A DNA stretch of 63,833 nucleotides, filler included, from Octopus bimaculoides (Eukaryota): the NCBI RefSeq assembly GCF_001194135.2. It is 5 parts of 5 records of this genome, joined end to end, with 100 filler letters (N's around TTAATTAATTAA, not from the genome) between each part and the next. Parts side by side here need not be neighbours in the genome. Positions count along the whole stretch, not along the records: positions 1 to 22,918 come from NC_069005.1; 4 more parts are not named here. One strand, written 5' to 3'. Positions 13,901 to 19,569 of this stretch are shown here, one piece after another; positions within the stretch are counted from its first letter, which is position 1; every line of letters starts with the position of its first letter. The position numbers and the translations under genes were made by a program. Under the pieces are notes generated by a model, which saw only the letters and a program-made list of their open reading frames with translations, did no database searches and had not been told where the DNA came from.

Positions 13901-16900
13901 NNNNNNNNNNNNNNNNNNNNNNNNNNNNNNNNNNNNNNNNNNNNNNNNNNNNNNNNNNNNNNNNNNNNNNNNNNNNNNNNNNNNNNNNNNNNNNNNNNNN
14001 NNNNNNNNNNNNNNNNNNNNNNNNNNNNNNNNNNNNNNNNNNNNNNNNNNNNNNNNNNNNNNNNNNNNNNNNNNNNNNNNNNNNNNNNNNNNNNNNNNNN
14101 NNNNNNNNNNNNNNNNNNNNNNNNNNNNNNNNNNNNNNNNNNNNNNNNNNNNNNNNNNNNNNNNNNNNNNNNNNNNNNNNNNNNNNNNNNNNNNNNNNNN
14201 NNNNNNNNNNNNNNNNNNNNNNNNNNNNNNNNNNNNNNNNNNNNNNNNNNNNNNNNNNNNNNNNNNNNNNNNNNNNNNNNNNNNNNNNNNNNNNNNNNNN
14301 NNNNNNNNNNNNNNNNNNNNNNNNNNNNNNNNNNNNNNNNNNNNNNNNNNNNNNNNNNNNNNNNNNNNNNNNNNNNNNNNNNNNNNNNNNNNNNNNNNNN
14401 NNNNNNNNNNNNNNNNNNNNNNNNNNNNNNNNNNNNNNNNNNNNNNNNNNNNNNNNNNNATTTACACCACCTGTCCTCGTCTGTTGTTATTTTTTGTATA
14501 TTCTCCCATATATATATATATATATACACACACACATACAGATATGTATATATATATATATGTATATACATATATGTGTGTGTGTATATACTAAATTTTA
14601 CATAGTAGCTTTAAATGATATTTTTGTTTGTTTTTTTTTTGTTTGTTTTTTTCTATTTTTCAGGTCGCTACTTTTAGTAACGGTGTCTTAAAACCATCTG
14701 TACCTAACTTCAAAACGGTCACAGAAGAAGTTCTTCAGACCATCCTGTTTTGTCCTGGCTGTCGCTGTCTAAATGACCAAGGAAACGCAGAATCTAACAT
14801 ACCAGGTTCGAGTTCTTTTGTTGGTGTAACAAACTTAATGCTGAAAGAATTGACAATTCGCAACTACTTCCACTACGACGACGACGACGTTCGCCTCTTC
14901 GACTGGCCGCTATGGGCAATTATTCTGGCAGTATTGACCAGTATCGGCATAATTTTCACCGTTCTGCTTTTCTTCTACCTTCTCATTGCCTATCCGATCC
15001 GTGGTGGAACTACAAGTCTAGGATTCTTGTTCTTAATCGGTATTCTTGGAATTTATGGCGTTAATTTCGCGTTCTTCGCCCAAGCGAGCATCACCGTATG
15101 CGCAGCCAGAAGGTCAGATGCAAATAATTTTCATTCCTATTTTCTTTACTTTCAAAACACGTTAAATTCTTCATAGCCCTGTCCATATATATATATACAT
15201 ATATATATACATATATATACATATGTATATATATATACATATGTATATATATATATATATATATANNNNNNNNNNNNNNNNNNNNNNNNNNNNNNNNNNN
15301 NNNNNNNNNNNNNNNNNNNNNNNNNNNNNNNNNNNNNNNNNNNNNNNNNNNNNNNNNNNNNNNNNNNNNNNNNNNNNNNNNNNNNNNNNNNNNNNNNNNN
15401 NNNNNNNNNNNNNNNNNNNNNNNNNNNNNNNNNNNNNNNNNNNNNNNNNNNNNNNNNNNNNNNNNNNNNNNNNNNNNNNNNAGAAGGTCAGATGCAAATA
15501 ATTTTCATTCCTATTTTCTTTACTTTCAAAACACGTTAAATTCTTCATAGCCCTGTCCATATATATATATACAAGCATAGATCGGTACAGGACGTTACCA
15601 ACGGTGCAAATAACATGAAATACGTAAACAACTAGGAAAATGGAAAACAGACAAGTAAACACAGGAAAAGGACCCTTCATCAGTTGTCGGCTGTTTATCT
15701 TCTCCTGATTTCGAGCATTCAACGACAATATGAGTCTTGAAAGACAGTTGCTCCCATAAATTCTAAAATAAAATTTAGGATCTATGGAGAGTCAAATTTG
15801 GGAACAAAGTCTCTACATGCAGGCGTACGCATGGTTGGGTGGTGAGAAGCTAGCTTCCCAACCACATGGTTCCGAGTTCAGTCTTACTGCAAAGCACCTT
15901 CTGCTAGTGTCTTCTACTATTGCTTCGGGCCGGCTAAAGCCTTGTGAGTGGATTTAATAGACGGAAACTGAAAGAGTCGTGTCTATGTGTGACTGTCTTT
16001 GTGTCTATGTTTCTCCACCACAACCTTTGACAACCGGTGTTGGCGTGTTTACGTTCGCGCGACTTAGCGATTCTGCCAATGTCTCCGATAGAATAAGTAC
16101 CAAGTTTTAGAGAGAAATTGGTACTAAGCTAGATTCATTCGGCTAAAAATTCTTCGAATAGATATAAGCTAATAATTCTTTTTAAAAAGATGTTTTCTGT
16201 GTTACGTCGTTTTTCGTGTTAAGTCGCATGTCTTGGAAACCAGTTACCGACGTAAGTTGAAGTCTGCTCATACTCCGATATTTACACTGATACACACCGA
16301 TTGTAATGTGTTATACTCTGTTATACTCTGTTATACTCTGTTATGCTTTTTCCATTAAAAAGTTTACTGACGAGCGGTTTCTTTTGTTGAAACTAGGTTC
16401 ACCATGGCTGTCGTTTATGTTCTCTGCTTTGCCTGCTTATGTGTAAAGTCTGTAGACAACTGGAGATATCGTAGTAATGAGATCGATAACCACGACTACC
16501 GCCGACTGTCCAGTAGCCTAGCTTTGGGTATTGTTACGCTACTCATCGTTCTCGTGCAGGTAAAGTTATAACGTTTATCTTTTTTTTCTAGACATCCAGC
16601 ACGGATGTGTAAACTGGCGCTCCGTCGGTCACGACGACGAGTGTTCCAGTCGATCCGATCAACGGAACAGCTTGCTCGTGAAATCAACGTTCAACTGGCT
16701 GAGTACTCCACAAACACGCATACCAGTAAAACAGTTCTTAGAGAAATTCAGCGTGACACAGAATGTGACAAGGCCGGAGCCTTTCAATTACAGCTACTCT
16801 TCATTTTTACCAGTTGACTACTACTACTTTTTCTTCATCTCCTCCTCCTTTTCGTCGTCGTTGTCGTCCTCGTTCTCCTCCTTCCTCTTCTATGTATATT

Positions 16901-19569
16901 GTCGTATTTTGGAAGGGTCATAATACCAATAAAAATACGCACTGGTTGTGTTCTACTTCAGGTTTTTTTTTTAATTAATCAGTTAATCAAAACCAATCAA
17001 TTATCAAATATTTATAAGGTTGTCAGCAAAAAAATTCGTTGCATTATTGATTTTCTTCTTTTTTCCTTCTCCCTCTACCTTTTTCTTCTTCTTCGTCTTC
17101 TATATGCGTGCATTGTTGTACTTTAGGAGGTTCGTTTACCAGTTAACATACACACTGGTTGTACATCACTTCTTGAATATAGTAATGCGATGTAAAGTTA
17201 TAACAAACCAATCAATAATCAACGAACTGATTGATTAGTTAAGAATAAGACAAAAGTGAACAATAACCAATGCATCTGTTTGTTGGCAAAATGACCCTTC
17301 CAAAATATGACAGTATTGGTTTCAGCACGCGGTTTTACATTAAAATTCTAGTAGAACAAATTCAAAACTGAAATATGTGTTTGTGTGCATGCTTGTGACA
17401 AAGAGAGAGAGAGAGAGAGAGTGAGAGAGAGAGAGAGAAGGAGAGAAAGTGGGAGAGAGAGAGAGAGAAGGAGATAAAGTGGGAGAGAGAGAGAAGAGAA
17501 AGTGGGAGAGAGAGAGAAGGAGAGAAAGTGGGAGAGAGAGAGAGAAGGAGAGAAAGTGGGAGAGAGAGAGAAGGAGAGAAAGTGGGAGAGAGAGAGAAGG
17601 AGAGAAAGTGGGAGAGAGAGATGGTGTGTGTGTGTGTGTTGTTGTACTTTGGGTTGGTCCTTTTGTCAATAAACACACGTACTGGTTGAACATCACTTCA
17701 GTTTTACTGTTAGACAATCTGTTGATAAATGAAGTATTGATTTTAATGTGCGTATGTATATGTATGTGAGTGTGTGTGTGTGTGTGTGTGTGTGCAATCA
17801 TGTATATGTATGTGTGTGTGTGTTTTTTTTGTTTATGTACGTACGCATGTATATAGAATCATATGTGTGTAAAATTTTCTCCGCTTCCTCTGTTTTTCCA
17901 GATCATCCTAAATATTGAATGGCTGCTTCTTGTCAAGCCTTCATCAGTGACCCTATATCCTACGATGAGCGTGCGCAGAGGTTATCCAGATACCCCCATC
18001 AAACTGCGGCACGATTACGAATGGTGCACCCCAGCAGACACCTATGACACCGGCATGGCACTTTCTTTCATATTCGTCATAATACTCGACGTTTTTGCCA
18101 TATGTTTCGGTTCGTTGCTCTGGGACAACGAGAAGAACTACTACGAGTCGCGTTGGATCGTGGTCGCTTGTCTATGTTCCAGCAGTTGTTTCCTCGTCTG
18201 GATGGTAGTCTCGACCTCTTCCGATGCAGTGTTCCGCGACCCAGCTGTAGCTATCGGCAACTTCATCAACGCCACCGCGCTACTGGCCGTCATGCCACTG
18301 CGCAAAGCCATTTTGTTAGTGAAAATCAAAAAAGAAGTCGAGGAAGAGGAAAAGGAGAAACCTTATTCTACGATCTATCGTGAGTATAAAAGATTTCCGG
18401 GCGTGACCATCCTGTCTTTTTTTTTCGGGCACAGTGTACCTAGAACAAACAAGTCTCATCGAGTATACGATGTCTTTCCTAGACTATAAACCAACGCAAC
18501 TTTCATTGAGGAATGTCATGTCTGGAGCTATTTTCTTGTTCAGACGTGTCTGTGTGTAGACACAGGCAAATAGCTTACAGTAGGCGTGGTTGTGAGGTTA
18601 TGAAGCTTGCTTCCCAACCATGTTGGGTTCCTGTCCCACTGTGTGGCTCCTCAAGCAATTGTCTTCTACGATAGCTTCGAGCCGATCAAAACTAAGTGGA
18701 TTTGTTAAGCGGAAATATATGAAGGAGCTTTAGCTGCTGTTTCTAGCATATCGAGTGTCCAGGTGCAGTTTTAGTATGCCAAGCTTTTCTGAACACATCT
18801 GTTACCAAAGGTGTTTCAATCATGACCATTACGTCTTATTGTATATCTAAAACTACGTTGCTTATTGTGTCCTGTTTTTCTATCTTTTGCAAAATGGTAG
18901 GGGTAGTCCCAAGAAAATATATTGCTGTTTACAGCAGGTCAACTGAACTGCGTAGAAAAGCCCTCATTCAAAACAGAATATTACTTGGTAATCTCTTTTT
19001 CGCTCGCCTCGAGCGAATAAATGCTCCGCTAACAACGCAGCTTAACTTAATGCCTCGCCTCGTGCATTTCAATGAATCAATTTGCATTTTAATCTTTTGG
19101 AATGTATTTAGAATAAATAGACAAATTATCATTCGAGATCTCGCTCTGCACAGAACAAATAATGATTTTTTTATCGGTTGGCAGATGTAAGCACTGATCA
19201 GAAAAAACAGCTGTGTTCGCTGACATTAGAAACAAAGCCAGTGGCTCGTTTAGGCTCACGTCTCCGGATGTTTCTAACTGACGAGACAGAGCATGTCGAA
19301 ACACTGGTGAACCAGAATCCCTTGCGCCAATGAGCAGCGAGAGTTATGAGCATATTGTCGCCGTAAAAAGGAGAAATCATTCTCCTGTGACGAGAACAAC
19401 AGCGACTAACATTTTTGCATTTGAATCTACTGAAATGTATTAAGAATAAATATGAGAATCATTGTCATTTAATTAATAATTGATTGCATGATTGATTTCA
19501 GATAACATTGACAGCAACAAAGTGTTCAGTGATTATACAGGGAACAACTACTCAGAGAAGTTTGCTTAA
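1..19569 (+). CDS. Gene model (5'-partial, gapped): multi-Venus-flytrap class C GPCR, >=4 VFT domains + 7TM
   Basis: Exons 1-483, 1713-2339, 3483-3804, 4596-5044, 6177-6324, (gap)7876-9079, (gap)11134-12082, 13391-13726, 14664-15112, 16397-16559, 17902-18379, probable 19502-19569. All visible junctions are GT/AG and phase-compatible. Class C motifs recur (GIFDVH, LDSC/LDTC, RTVP, WFxE(Y/F)Y..FxC, IN(A/S)VY/F), followed by seven hydrophobic segments. Confidence 0.9.
1713..2339 (+). CDS. GPCR exon: Cys linker + N-terminal lobe of VFT-b
   Basis: Acceptor CAACAG|ATC; IGSYD...[10 protein letters not shown]...IGAIFGVH...LDSC...SPAATS...YRTVPGE...FIQ; donor CAG|GTAAGT, phase 0. Confidence 0.92.
2541..2935 (+). 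mobile_element. R4/Dong-type non-LTR retrotransposon fragment (RLE domain), inactivated
   Basis: Conceptual translation with stops: [27 protein letters not shown]...[21 protein letters not shown]...LIDMSIP...K..KYKDL, the zinc-knuckle/RHD/PD..D pattern of RLE elements. Confidence 0.75.
3483..3804 (+). CDS. GPCR exon: middle of VFT-b
   Basis: Acceptor after a pyrimidine tract AACAG|GTG; VVLSGDD...EGICII...; donor ACAA|GTAAGA, phase 1. Confidence 0.85.
4596..5044 (+). CDS. GPCR exon: C-terminal part of VFT-b
   Basis: Acceptor TTTCAG|TC completes the phase-1 codon (Ile); [15 protein letters not shown]...STINAVY...QQK; donor AAG|GTAAGA, phase 0. Confidence 0.9.
6177..6324 (+). CDS. GPCR exon: Cys linker + start of VFT-c
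   Basis: Acceptor TCGCAG|GTC; VGTFNG...[10 protein letters not shown]...YIPGDIVIA; donor GCAG|GTATAA, phase 1. Confidence 0.88.
7022..7249 (+). mobile_element. Internally deleted mariner (MITE-like), 228 bp
   Basis: ~28-bp TIRs (TTGGGTTGTCCGGAAAGTTTGTGCCGAT / ATCGGCACGAACTTTCCGGACAAATCAA), TA on both sides; interior encodes a mariner C-terminus ([30 protein letters not shown]). Confidence 0.85.
7876..9079 (+). CDS. GPCR exon (5' end in N gap): body of VFT-c, the most mGluR-like module
   Basis: Frame open from the gap edge: [24 protein letters not shown]...GGGTSDSS...GYGATT...LRTVPTD...[14 protein letters not shown]...GYKE; donor GAG|GTAAGT, phase 0. Confidence 0.93.
9285..9530 (+). mobile_element. 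tRNA-derived SINE, family B (related copies ~15820-16045 +, ~18581-18712 +, ~23690-23805 -, ~49535-49650 -)
   Basis: Shared head GGCGTGGCTGTGTGGTAAG...GGTTCAATCCC (pol III A/B-box-like) and body AAGTGTCTTCTACTA...GGATTTGGTAGACGGAAACTGAA across several copies. Confidence 0.75.
9531..9620 (-). mobile_element. Short RLE-type LINE fragment
   Basis: Minus strand reads [25 protein letters not shown] (W..P..T.....N.PDIV motif). Confidence 0.5.
11134..12082 (+). CDS. GPCR exon (5' end in N gap): most of VFT-d, a degenerate module
   Basis: Frame open from the gap edge: [22 protein letters not shown]...LALDTC...[16 protein letters not shown]...YSK; donor AAA|GTAAGT, phase 0. Confidence 0.9.
12245..12450 (-). 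mobile_element. tRNA-derived SINE, family A (other copies ~9960-10120 +, ~21635-21806 -, ~21921-22068 +, ~22515-22562 +, ~24119-24334 +, ~29090-29225 -, ~41270-41400 +, ~41700-42070 +, ~51480-52170 mixed)
   Basis: Recurrent consensus AAGGCGGCGAGCTGGCAGAATCGTTAGCACG...GAGTTCAAATTCCGCCGAGGTCGACTTTGCCTTTCATCC...AAGTACCAGT...GGGGTCGATGTAATCGAC, often ending in (ATT)n tracts. Confidence 0.8.
13391..13726 (+). CDS. GPCR exon: C-terminal part of VFT-d
   Basis: Acceptor TGAACAG|CCG; PCTRYE...[12 protein letters not shown]...TFQT; donor ACA|GTAAGT, phase 0. Confidence 0.87.
14664..15112 (+). CDS. GPCR exon: reduced Cys linker, TM1, TM2, start of TM3
   Basis: Acceptor TTTCAG|GTC; VATF...FCPGCRC...[11 protein letters not shown] (TM1)...[20 protein letters not shown] (TM2)...VCAAR; donor AG|GTCAGA, phase 2. 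Confidence 0.9.
16397..16559 (+). CDS. GPCR exon: TM3, ICL2, start of TM4 (absent from the ORF track)
   Basis: Acceptor AACTAG|G completes Arg; [25 protein letters not shown]...[14 protein letters not shown]; donor CAG|GTAAAG, phase 0; 163 nt fits both neighbours. Confidence 0.88.
17400..17620. repeat. GA-derived minisatellite (~24-26 bp unit)
   Basis: Tandem GAGAGAGAGAAGGAGAGAAAGTGG units in the TM4 intron. Confidence 0.85.
17902..18379 (+). CDS. GPCR exon: end of TM4, ECL2, TM5-TM7, start of C-tail
   Basis: Acceptor TTTCCAG|ATC; IILNIEWLL...EWC...NYYESRWI...[18 protein letters not shown]; donor TATC|GTGAGT, phase 1. Confidence 0.9.
19502..19569 (+). CDS. Probable last coding exon of the GPCR ([22 protein letters not shown])
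   Basis: Acceptor GATTTCAG|AT fits phase 1; stop TAA at 19567-19569; strong donor AAG|GTAAGC at 19612/19613. Alternative 3' ends exist (see findings). Confidence 0.5.

Follow-up and report, generated by a model that had tools for sequence, protein, structure and literature searches.

Positions 14664-19569 of a 63,833-nucleotide stretch of Octopus bimaculoides DNA (RefSeq assembly GCF_001194135.2), hereafter the window, carry the 3′ end of a gene for a G-protein-coupled receptor (GPCR) of class C. The window comprises five joined parts of the assembly, and the gene lies in the part from NC_069005.1 (positions 1 to 22,918); the DNA is eukaryotic and microsatellite-rich, with nine gaps of N within the piece considered here. 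The segment likely encodes the linker, seven-transmembrane (7TM) domain, and tail of a giant receptor with five Venus flytrap (VFT) modules, the 7TM of which falls in one branch with GPRC5 and apart from metabotropic glutamate receptors (mGluRs), CaSR, and GABA-B; GPRC5 is then most simply regarded as a flytrap-losing chordate offshoot, and we hold this reading with good, though not full, confidence. A sequence-only reading of the same DNA had described the 7TM as GPRC5/RAIG-like and proposed its fusion to mGluR-like VFTs, and had asked whether GPRC5- and BOSS-type receptors lost an ancestral VFT or this lineage gained VFTs by shuffling.

The segment 14664-19569 contains four coding exons on the plus strand with canonical splice sites and matching phases, and their spliced product of 385 residues consists of a cysteine linker (VATFSNG...CPGCRC), seven helices, a tail, and a stop codon. 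The first exon (14664..15112; acceptor ttttcag at 14662-3, donor GT at 15113) encodes the linker, transmembrane helices (TM) 1 and 2, and the first half of TM3, matches Pfam 7tm_3, and is 95% identical to residues 2184-2333 of the O. vulgaris protein CAI9740512 (P0181). The second half of TM3, intracellular loop 2 (ICL2; VKSVDNWRY), and TM4 are encoded at 16397..16559 (acceptor ag at 16395-6, donor CAG/GTAAAG), with 91% identity to P0181 residues 2333-2390. The codon AG/G split by the first of these introns gives R and restores AARR/FTMAVVY in the middle of TM3. The third exon (17902..18379; acceptor cag/ATC, phase 1 donor C/GTGAGT at 18380) encodes extracellular loop 2 (ECL2) and the conserved Cys in it, then TM5, TM6, and TM7, followed by the proximal part of the tail; it is 86% identical to protein P0031, and its helices are present in an AlphaFold2 model. 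The terminal exon (19502..19569; acceptor ag at 19500-1) encodes the rest of the tail and the stop codon TAA (19567-9), fits the preceding donor in phase 1, and matches the last 24 residues of P0181. All three strings that the sequence-only reading had quoted are found on this strand: the TM2-TM3 string in the spliced join of exons 14664-15112 and 16397-16559, the 14-residue string in the TM7 part of exon 17902-18379, and the candidate tail NKVFS at 19516-19530 in the terminal exon. The GPRC5 strings that it had cited are close to those of real GPRC5C (...GTLGLFGLSFAFIV...STCSSRRFLFGVLFAACFSCLL, KWDDPTLAIALVANAW, and MENKAFSMDEP).

An assembly gap at 15266..15481 is flanked by the donor at 15113 and by the acceptor at 16396, and a hidden exon within it was considered and ruled out. 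The O. vulgaris ortholog is unbroken at this junction (residues 2184-2333, then 2333-2390), relatives with the whole 7TM in one exon have no extra residues there (alignment A1), and a second cephalopod-like contig (L003) shares this exon break; since these three sources agree, the gap is intronic, and no coding sequence is lost to it. Without the last exon, the product (linker and seven helices) scores 99.8 bits against Pfam 7tm_3 (E 2.7e-28; curated cut-off 33.5), which places the 7TM within class C. The roles of the TM3 and ECL2 Cys, of the "ionic lock" between TM3 Lys and TM6 Glu, and of the TM6 Trp in class C receptors are known from mGluR structures. The window 7TM aligns with all these hallmarks, i.e., VCAARR in TM3, the ECL2 Cys (C180 in A1), VK in CVKSVDNWR, E in YYESRW, and W in FLVWMVV.

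Upstream of the 7TM, on the same strand and in frame, lie the end of VFT module 2 (V2) and then modules V3, V4, and V5. The C-terminal exon of V2 occupies 1..483 (88% identity by tblastn to P0181 residues 797-958; donor GTAAGA after codon AAG at 483), and the gene extends upstream of the window. V3 is read completely from three exons: 1713..2339 with a linker (IGSYD...CPSFCYEC) and the N-lobe, which is open in frame and resembles other VFT N-lobes (acceptor cag/ATC, donor CAG/GTAAGT); 3483..3804 with the middle part, which ends in phase 1, is open in the spliced frame, and is 93% identical to residues 1-107 of O. sinensis P0037; and 4596..5044 with the C-terminal part (88% identity to P0181 residues 1064-1215; donor AAG/GTAAGA). 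V4 opens at 6177..6324 with a linker (VGTFNG...CPGKCDNC) and its first strand (acceptor cag/GTC, donor G/GTATAA), matching P0181 residues 1211-1265. Its main exon, 7877..9079 (91% identity to residues 1301-1705; donor GAG/GTAAGT), has its 5′ end inside the gap 7260-7875. The membrane-proximal V5 is encoded by a main exon at 11135..12082 (90% identity to residues 1757-2071), with its linker and first strand inside the gap 10137-11133, and by a C-terminal exon at 13391..13726 (90% identity to residues 2071-2185), the phase 0 donor of which (ACA/GTAAGT) joins the exon at 14664. The first 30-55 residues or so of V4 and of V5 thus lie inside assembly gaps, and gaps 7260-7875 and 10137-11133 take approximately 30-55 codons from each. 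The introns are dense in mono-, di-, and trinucleotide repeats, where the assembly breaks (1022-1606, 2958-3330, 5117-5650, 7260-7875, 10137-11133, 12518-13047, and 13901-14459).

Every VFT module ends on a phase 0 donor, and the next exon opens with a linker of the form V/I-G/A-T/S-F/Y...C-x2-5-C-x2-C. Because the 7TM exon opens with the identical three-Cys pattern, the 7TM continues the VFT array and is not a separate gene. The ectodomain accordingly consists of five tandem VFT (ANF_receptor) modules joined by short three-Cys linkers (C-x2-5-C-x2-C), and the window carries the last 1,900 or so amino acids (aa) of a protein of approximately 2,800 aa. Three cysteines are observed in each inter-module linker (1713-1800, 6177-6324, and 14664-14790, and 5118-5300 of contig L003, where they read ACSEC), and these linkers may be what is left of the CCWxCxxC segment in the cysteine-rich domain of mGluRs.

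The window gene is the ortholog (88-95% aa identity, tblastn) of CAI9740512, a 2,570-aa O. vulgaris protein annotated as "glutamate receptor 3-like," and of the partial O. sinensis protein XP_029653751, annotated as "mGluR3-like," and it covers roughly residues 797-2570 of the former. The exon 1713-2339 is intact and well spliced in the window, and CAI9740512 skips from the end of V2 to the middle of V3; the public O. vulgaris model is therefore probably short by about 209 aa, which probably explains why it falls approximately 230 aa below the 2,730-2,870 aa of other spiralian orthologs. When 1.84 billion representative proteins were searched exhaustively with a family profile, 920 hits were obtained, and many of the best of them are 2,200-2,870 aa long and carry the 7TM at their very C-terminal end. 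By local HMM counts and Pfam, there are five ANF_receptor modules in the scallop Argopecten (XP_069135753), the freshwater mussel Sinanodonta, the pond snail Physella, and the nemertean Tubulanus. Four are present in a tick, Limulus, and the hemichordate Saccoglossus (XP_002735016), a starfish model has at least three, and amphioxus has two; single-VFT relatives exist as well, e.g., P0024 of Sinanodonta (825 aa). No Pfam match to the nine-cysteine domain NCD3G was obtained in five full-length members, including the octopus ortholog. Positional orthology of V1-V5 extends over octopus, scallop, snail, and nemertean (P0034, P0036, P0041, P0047, and P0181), which makes the five-module array older than the split between molluscs and nemerteans; furthermore, the chelicerate V4 matches the spiralian V5. 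The window gene shares the family features, namely four to five ANF_receptor modules, short Cys linkers, a C-terminal 7tm_3 domain, and positional orthology. Public names of all members are either "uncharacterized" or "mGluR-like," and no description of class C receptors with tandem or multiple VFTs was found in the literature searched. The family is one of uncharacterised bilaterian receptors with four to five tandem VFTs and one 7TM, known so far as unreviewed predictions.

Several genomic observations accompany this family. Contig L003 is 58-71% identical to the window gene, with the same exon layout and two VFT open reading frames (ORFs) up to 7 kb upstream of its 7TM. In two more distant loci (L001 and L002), a VFT exon is followed by a small exon for the Cys linker and then by one 7TM exon, in this order and on one strand, and V5 is the window VFT nearest to their single VFT. 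In Sinanodonta woodiana, the single-VFT P0024 (ACJMK2_011308, 825 aa) and the five-VFT P0036 (ACJMK2_011309, 2,798 aa) have consecutive locus tags on a shared contig; their 7TMs are mutual closest relatives, and the VFT of P0024 is of the V5 type. The pair could represent a local duplication minus four modules or a split gene model.

A reading of the VFT array and the 7TM as two adjacent genes, or as joined only by the assembly, with the long proteins as artefacts of annotation, is hardly credible. This explanation can point to the nine assembly gaps in the window, three of them in VFT coding parts, to the octopus gene having been read from genomic DNA, and to the exon missing from the public O. 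vulgaris model. It is opposed by the modules themselves, which are separated by neither a stop codon nor a signal peptide nor a membrane helix, by canonical phase-matched splice sites at each junction, and by the opening of the 7TM exon with the linker found after every VFT. Furthermore, the order and strand are repeated in three unrelated loci, annotations made independently in at least eight phyla or classes predict a single protein, and uninterrupted VFT+7TM ORFs occur on short assembled contigs (e.g., P0063, with 817 aa on a contig of 4.7 kb), as would be the case for spliced mRNA.

The kinship of the 7TM was examined in neighbour-joining (NJ) trees of scoredist distances over approximately 265 columns and 117-119 sequences; the human CaSR, mGluR2, mGluR5, and GABA-B1/2 references were checked against PDB beforehand (their matches were contiguous, had no gaps, and reached about 2.1-2.2 bits per residue; the check was residue by residue for CaSR only). 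In all of 200 bootstrap replicates, the unrooted trees separate mGluRs, CaSR, and a group of invertebrate receptors with mGluR motifs from the remaining set, i.e., GPRC5, all multi-VFT groups, the amphioxus two-VFT receptors, a single-VFT group, and a short group. GABA-B is the most distant in 7TM sequence (mean distance 2.3-2.5) and served as the outgroup; with this root, GPRC5 and the multi-VFT set form a clade in 96% of the replicates and the mGluR/CaSR set in 83%, and the long-branched GPRC5 is never placed at the root. Quartets likewise unite GPRC5 with the multi-VFT family against mGluR and CaSR in 100%. Nesting of the 7TM within mGluR/CaSR, which would have spoken against the GPRC5 affinity, is thus not observed. 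The sampled GPRC5C and GPRC5D are monophyletic without the window protein in 100% of the replicates, and the window protein stands in its own multi-VFT clade (87-96% with scoredist, 61-64% with Kimura distances).

The same kinship appears in pairwise and profile scores. Fish GPRC5C scores 60-76 bits against 7TMs of the multi-VFT family; in a copy of PDB that also holds CaSR, GABA-B, and the taste receptor TAS1R2, it scores 151 bits against human GPRC5D, and its best non-GPRC5 chain is mGluR3, with 27 bits. By hhalign, the GPRC5 profile scores 237 against the protostome multi-VFT profile (E 6e-35), its best partner, 206 against the ambulacrarian multi-VFT profile, 168 against the single-VFT invertebrate group, and 101 against mGluR (E 3e-14). 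In a large protein library, the family profile reaches fish GPRC5C with 81 bits. The window 7TM is 21-23% identical to GPRC5C/D in the multiple alignment, 15% to human mGluR2/5, and 17% to CaSR, and CaSR and mGluR2 are 32% identical to each other. The 7TM is therefore nearer to GPRC5 than to mGluR, CaSR, or GABA-B by distance methods only, in agreement with hhalign and pairwise scores. Foldseek with an AlphaFold2 model of the 7TM (pLDDT 70, pTM 0.74) ranked GPRC5D first, with mGluR8/2/3 within tenfold; this margin is too small to discriminate, and the ranking was set aside. A further homolog search with a profile of GPRC5C/D and amphioxus sequences was saturated by fish GPRC5C and, within that limit, returned no GPRC5A, GPRC5B, or BOSS.

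Among sequence motifs, the multi-VFT family, GPRC5, and amphioxus P0169 have in common [WYF][RD]DP-x-[VL]-x-I-[AG]-x-x-x-N-A where TM7 begins; this motif is weaker in the remaining groups of the clade and lacking in mGluR and CaSR, and FAF in TM2 is similarly distributed. Conversely, KTNRI in ICL2 and PKxY in TM7, common to mGluR and CaSR, are absent from the multi-VFT family and GPRC5. At the transition from the N-terminus to TM1, the family has (R)NYF.YD...WP.WAI and GPRC5C/D have YF.LCD...WGI; the two stretches look alike, but a W..(A/G)I element also occurs at this place in mGluR and CaSR. TM3 C..RR(...G), which the sequence-only reading had counted towards GPRC5, was rejected as evidence because it is found in every class C group. 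The tail motif NKVFS is retained in O. vulgaris as NNKVFS, and bivalves and the nemertean have Y-x-N-x-[AGV]-[FY]-[EK] at the equivalent place. The pattern N-x-[AGV]-[FY]-[SEK], defined after inspection of the data, is present in 8 of the 42 tails of the family, against 0.6 expected from shuffling, in 4 of 10 GPRC5 tails (0.1 expected), and in none of 7 canonical mGluR-like tails. The motif likeness to GPRC5 is genuine for the stretch before and in TM7 and only suggestive for the tail. Spiralian tails (window 19502-19569; P0024, P0034, P0036, P0041, and P0114) have the longer form Y-x-N-x-[AGV]-[FY]-[SEK]-x-[DE], which resembles (F/E)-x-N-[KR]-[AG]-F-S of GPRC5C and may be a sorting or phosphorylation site.

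The window 7TM is, as judged from its sequence, related to GPRC5 through a shared class C branch, yet it is not a member of the GPRC5 family, because the short N-terminus, the clade membership, and the chordate distribution of that family all fail; of the earlier GPRC5/RAIG-like label, the kinship is upheld and the membership is not. GPRC5 has an N-terminus of 30-50 aa without a VFT, as opposed to the five VFTs of the octopus protein, 7TM identity is only 21-23%, and the TM3 Lys, retained in the multi-VFT family, is lost in GPRC5. GPRC5 was reported to be chordate-specific, with long N-termini in its nearest invertebrate homologues (Kurtenbach et al., 2011; PMC3238225), whereas the window gene is from a mollusc and shares 88-95% identity with proteins of O. 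vulgaris and O. sinensis.

P0162, P0152, and related single-VFT proteins of approximately 980 aa, named "mGluR2" in Lingula and "mGluR3-like" in Physella by automatic annotation, lie inside the GPRC5/multi-VFT clade and outside true mGluRs, and their names are misleading. The single-VFT receptors P0148, P0127, P0130, P0155, and P0157, of approximately 630-870 aa, retain the mGluR motifs KTNRI, NEAKF, and PK and adjoin true mGluRs and CaSR; this group is also among the top matches of the multi-VFT family profile.

Every lineage in the GPRC5 branch other than GPRC5 carries at least one VFT, with the exception of a small group of short, possibly truncated sequences. Since these lineages carry VFTs and the array is ancient, loss towards GPRC5 is more economical than gain, which suggests that GPRC5 lost ancestral VFTs rather than that the multi-VFT lineage gained them. 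This agrees with the long-N-terminus homologues (PMC3238225) and with the pocketless flytrap predicted for BOSS (PMC11743138). The opposite course, in which a flytrap-free ancestor of the GPRC5 type acquired mGluR-derived VFTs by exon shuffling and then duplicated them, is very improbable. Its arguments are that the VFTs are far more mGluR-like (170 bits) than the 7TM (about 30 bits) and that module borders on phase 0 junctions would permit both shuffling and duplication. It must account, however, for VFTs throughout the protostome and ambulacrarian multi-VFT receptors, the amphioxus two-VFT receptors, and the single-VFT group, by several gains in place of the one loss that a chordate-restricted GPRC5 (PMC3238225) requires. 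The five modules are also positionally orthologous across spiralian phyla, and hence ancient, and BOSS, held to be GPRC5B-like, is predicted to have a degenerate VFT without a cysteine-rich domain (PMC11743138). Of the two courses that the sequence-only reading had left open, loss in GPRC5 is thus favoured over gain by shuffling in the octopus lineage.

BOSS (bride of sevenless), an orphan class C receptor of insects and the ligand of Sevenless, is described as a GPRC5B-like 7TM with a predicted pocketless flytrap and no cysteine-rich stem (PMC11743138, 2025), and a PBP-like I domain is assigned by InterPro to a hemipteran boss (supplement of PMC8660763). The layout of a flytrap-fold ectodomain and a GPRC5-like 7TM without a cysteine-rich domain (PMC11743138) is matched by the multi-VFT family, but BOSS has one such flytrap and the octopus receptor five, and the likeness is one of architecture, compared by description only. 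Members of approximately 880-1,080 aa (P0073, P0075, P0084, P0088, and P0183), arthropod proteins among them and at least two from mites, have one degenerate VFT (ANF_receptor 17-37 bits) and so resemble Drosophila BOSS (896 aa) in layout. They may form a link between BOSS and the multi-VFT receptors; a profile built from the ectodomains of the mite and arthropod single-VFT members retrieved no BOSS chain from PDB, only weak matches to mGluR VFTs. A wider view, in which GPRC5 and possibly insect BOSS are flytrap-stripped or degenerate descendants of an ancient bilaterian multi-VFT receptor and a major class C branch, beside mGluR/CaSR/taste receptors and GABA-B, is hidden under "mGluR-like" names, is put forward tentatively, as a possibility that we would not favour over its contrary.

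The VFTs of the array are clearly of the mGluR type, as the sequence-only reading had proposed for the domains fused to this 7TM. V4, the best conserved and most mGluR-like module, scores 165-170 bits against mGluR3 in a PDB search, with about one third of residues identical, and 68 bits against CaSR, whereas V5, the most diverged in octopus, scores 23 bits against mGluR3. In the alignment, many modules of the nemertean and bivalves, as well as V3 of Saccoglossus, retain the mGluR3 residues for the alpha-carboxylate and alpha-amino groups (S151, T174, D194, Y222, and D301) or have conservative replacements for them, and octopus V3 keeps most ligand-holding residues. K389, the Lys for the glutamate side chain, is conserved in no module of any species examined. 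At S151, T174, Y222, D301, and K389, the window has S, T, F, G, and S in V4 and E, T, S, E, and S in V5, so that neither has the full glutamate-contacting set. Since the alpha-amino-acid residues are kept in several modules of slowly evolving species and K389 never is, amino-acid-like ligands other than glutamate are the best guess for this family.

In class C receptors, ligand-driven closure of the flytrap is passed to a dimeric 7TM. By analogy, a small ligand would close one or more flytraps of the octopus receptor, and closure would reorient the receptor dimer and its 7TM domains. The signal would pass through the short three-Cys linker and not through a rigid cysteine-rich domain, as in GABA-B, in which the flytrap is also joined to the 7TM without such a domain but is single. 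Different amino-acid-like ligands may bind to several of the modules, or these may have a part in packing or adhesion, and the window 7TM, given its conserved hallmark residues, probably still signals.

A number of points weigh against the reading of a five-VFT receptor allied to GPRC5. Three assembly gaps fall within coding parts of the VFT array, and the octopus gene model draws on genomic DNA and homologous proteins. Octopus V4 retains S/T/D, with F and G in place of Y222 and D301, V5 is degenerate, and the putative ligand, dimerisation, and G-protein coupling are taken from knowledge of the family only. The trees are of the NJ type only, and their sample leaves out BOSS, GPRC5A/B, the GPRC5-like genes of Ciona and amphioxus, and GPR156/158/179; it was built from the best matches to the multi-VFT family's own profile, with GPRC5 represented by GPRC5C and GPRC5D only. 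Furthermore, the sister of GPRC5 varies among the protostome multi-VFT receptors (22-37%), the amphioxus two-VFT receptors (23-26%), and another group (10-21%), and GPRC5 with the protostome multi-VFT receptors reaches 77% only when seven unstable sequences are removed. A support value of 84% for the latter grouping was discarded as a label displaced by re-rooting, for which the recount gave 21-37%. Finally, hhalign from the octopus family side scores mGluR 238 and GPRC5 229-237, and the family profile scores 72.6 bits against mGluR3 and 36 bits against human GPRC5D in PDB; the asymmetry between these scores and those from the GPRC5 side is expected if a fast-evolving GPRC5 derives from a slower multi-VFT-like stock.

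Part of these points would also fit a divergent receptor of the mGluR type, as annotated ("mGluR3-like"), in which resemblance to GPRC5 would be due to mGluR motifs lost in both or to an artefact of the trees rather than to common descent; we consider this unlikely, although less so than the other alternatives. In PDB, both the window 7TM and the family profile find their best matches in mGluR6/2/3 and score lower with GPRC5D, the VFTs bear a strong likeness to those of mGluRs, the Foldseek margins between GPRC5D and mGluRs are within tenfold, and the hhalign scores from the family side and the restriction to NJ trees tell in the same direction. The octopus receptor shares with mGluRs of groups II/III the type of VFT, and several modules keep the alpha-amino-acid residues. 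An mGluR, however, has one VFT and a nine-cysteine domain, whereas the octopus receptor has five VFTs and, in the window, only the linker CPGCRC before the 7TM. The nine-cysteine domain, KTNRI, PKxY, and K389 are all absent from the family, and the 7TM lies outside the mGluR+CaSR clade. Moreover, CaSR and mGluR 7TMs score 130-167 bits against each other, whereas the multi-VFT family scores 30-100 bits against mGluRs; the GABA-B root separates the family from mGluR+CaSR in 96% of the replicates, with GPRC5 never moving to the root; and GPRC5 matches the multi-VFT family approximately 20 orders of magnitude better than mGluR. On this evidence, a class C branch shared by GPRC5 and the multi-VFT receptors remains the likely placement of the window 7TM.

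GPRC5A-D (RAIG1-4) are clinically important vertebrate orphan receptors without a known ligand or ligand-binding domain, and GPRC5D is a target of myeloma immunotherapy; BOSS is equally puzzling. If the closest relatives of GPRC5 indeed bear intact mGluR-like flytraps, the ancestral ligand class and mode of activation would become testable in invertebrate proteins, and the question of VFT loss in GPRC5 would receive a concrete answer. Five flytraps on a single 7TM would also widen the range of class C ectodomains, with no counterpart described in the literature searched. Furthermore, a systematic mis-annotation of such receptors as "mGluR3-like" or "uncharacterized" is flagged across many invertebrate genomes.

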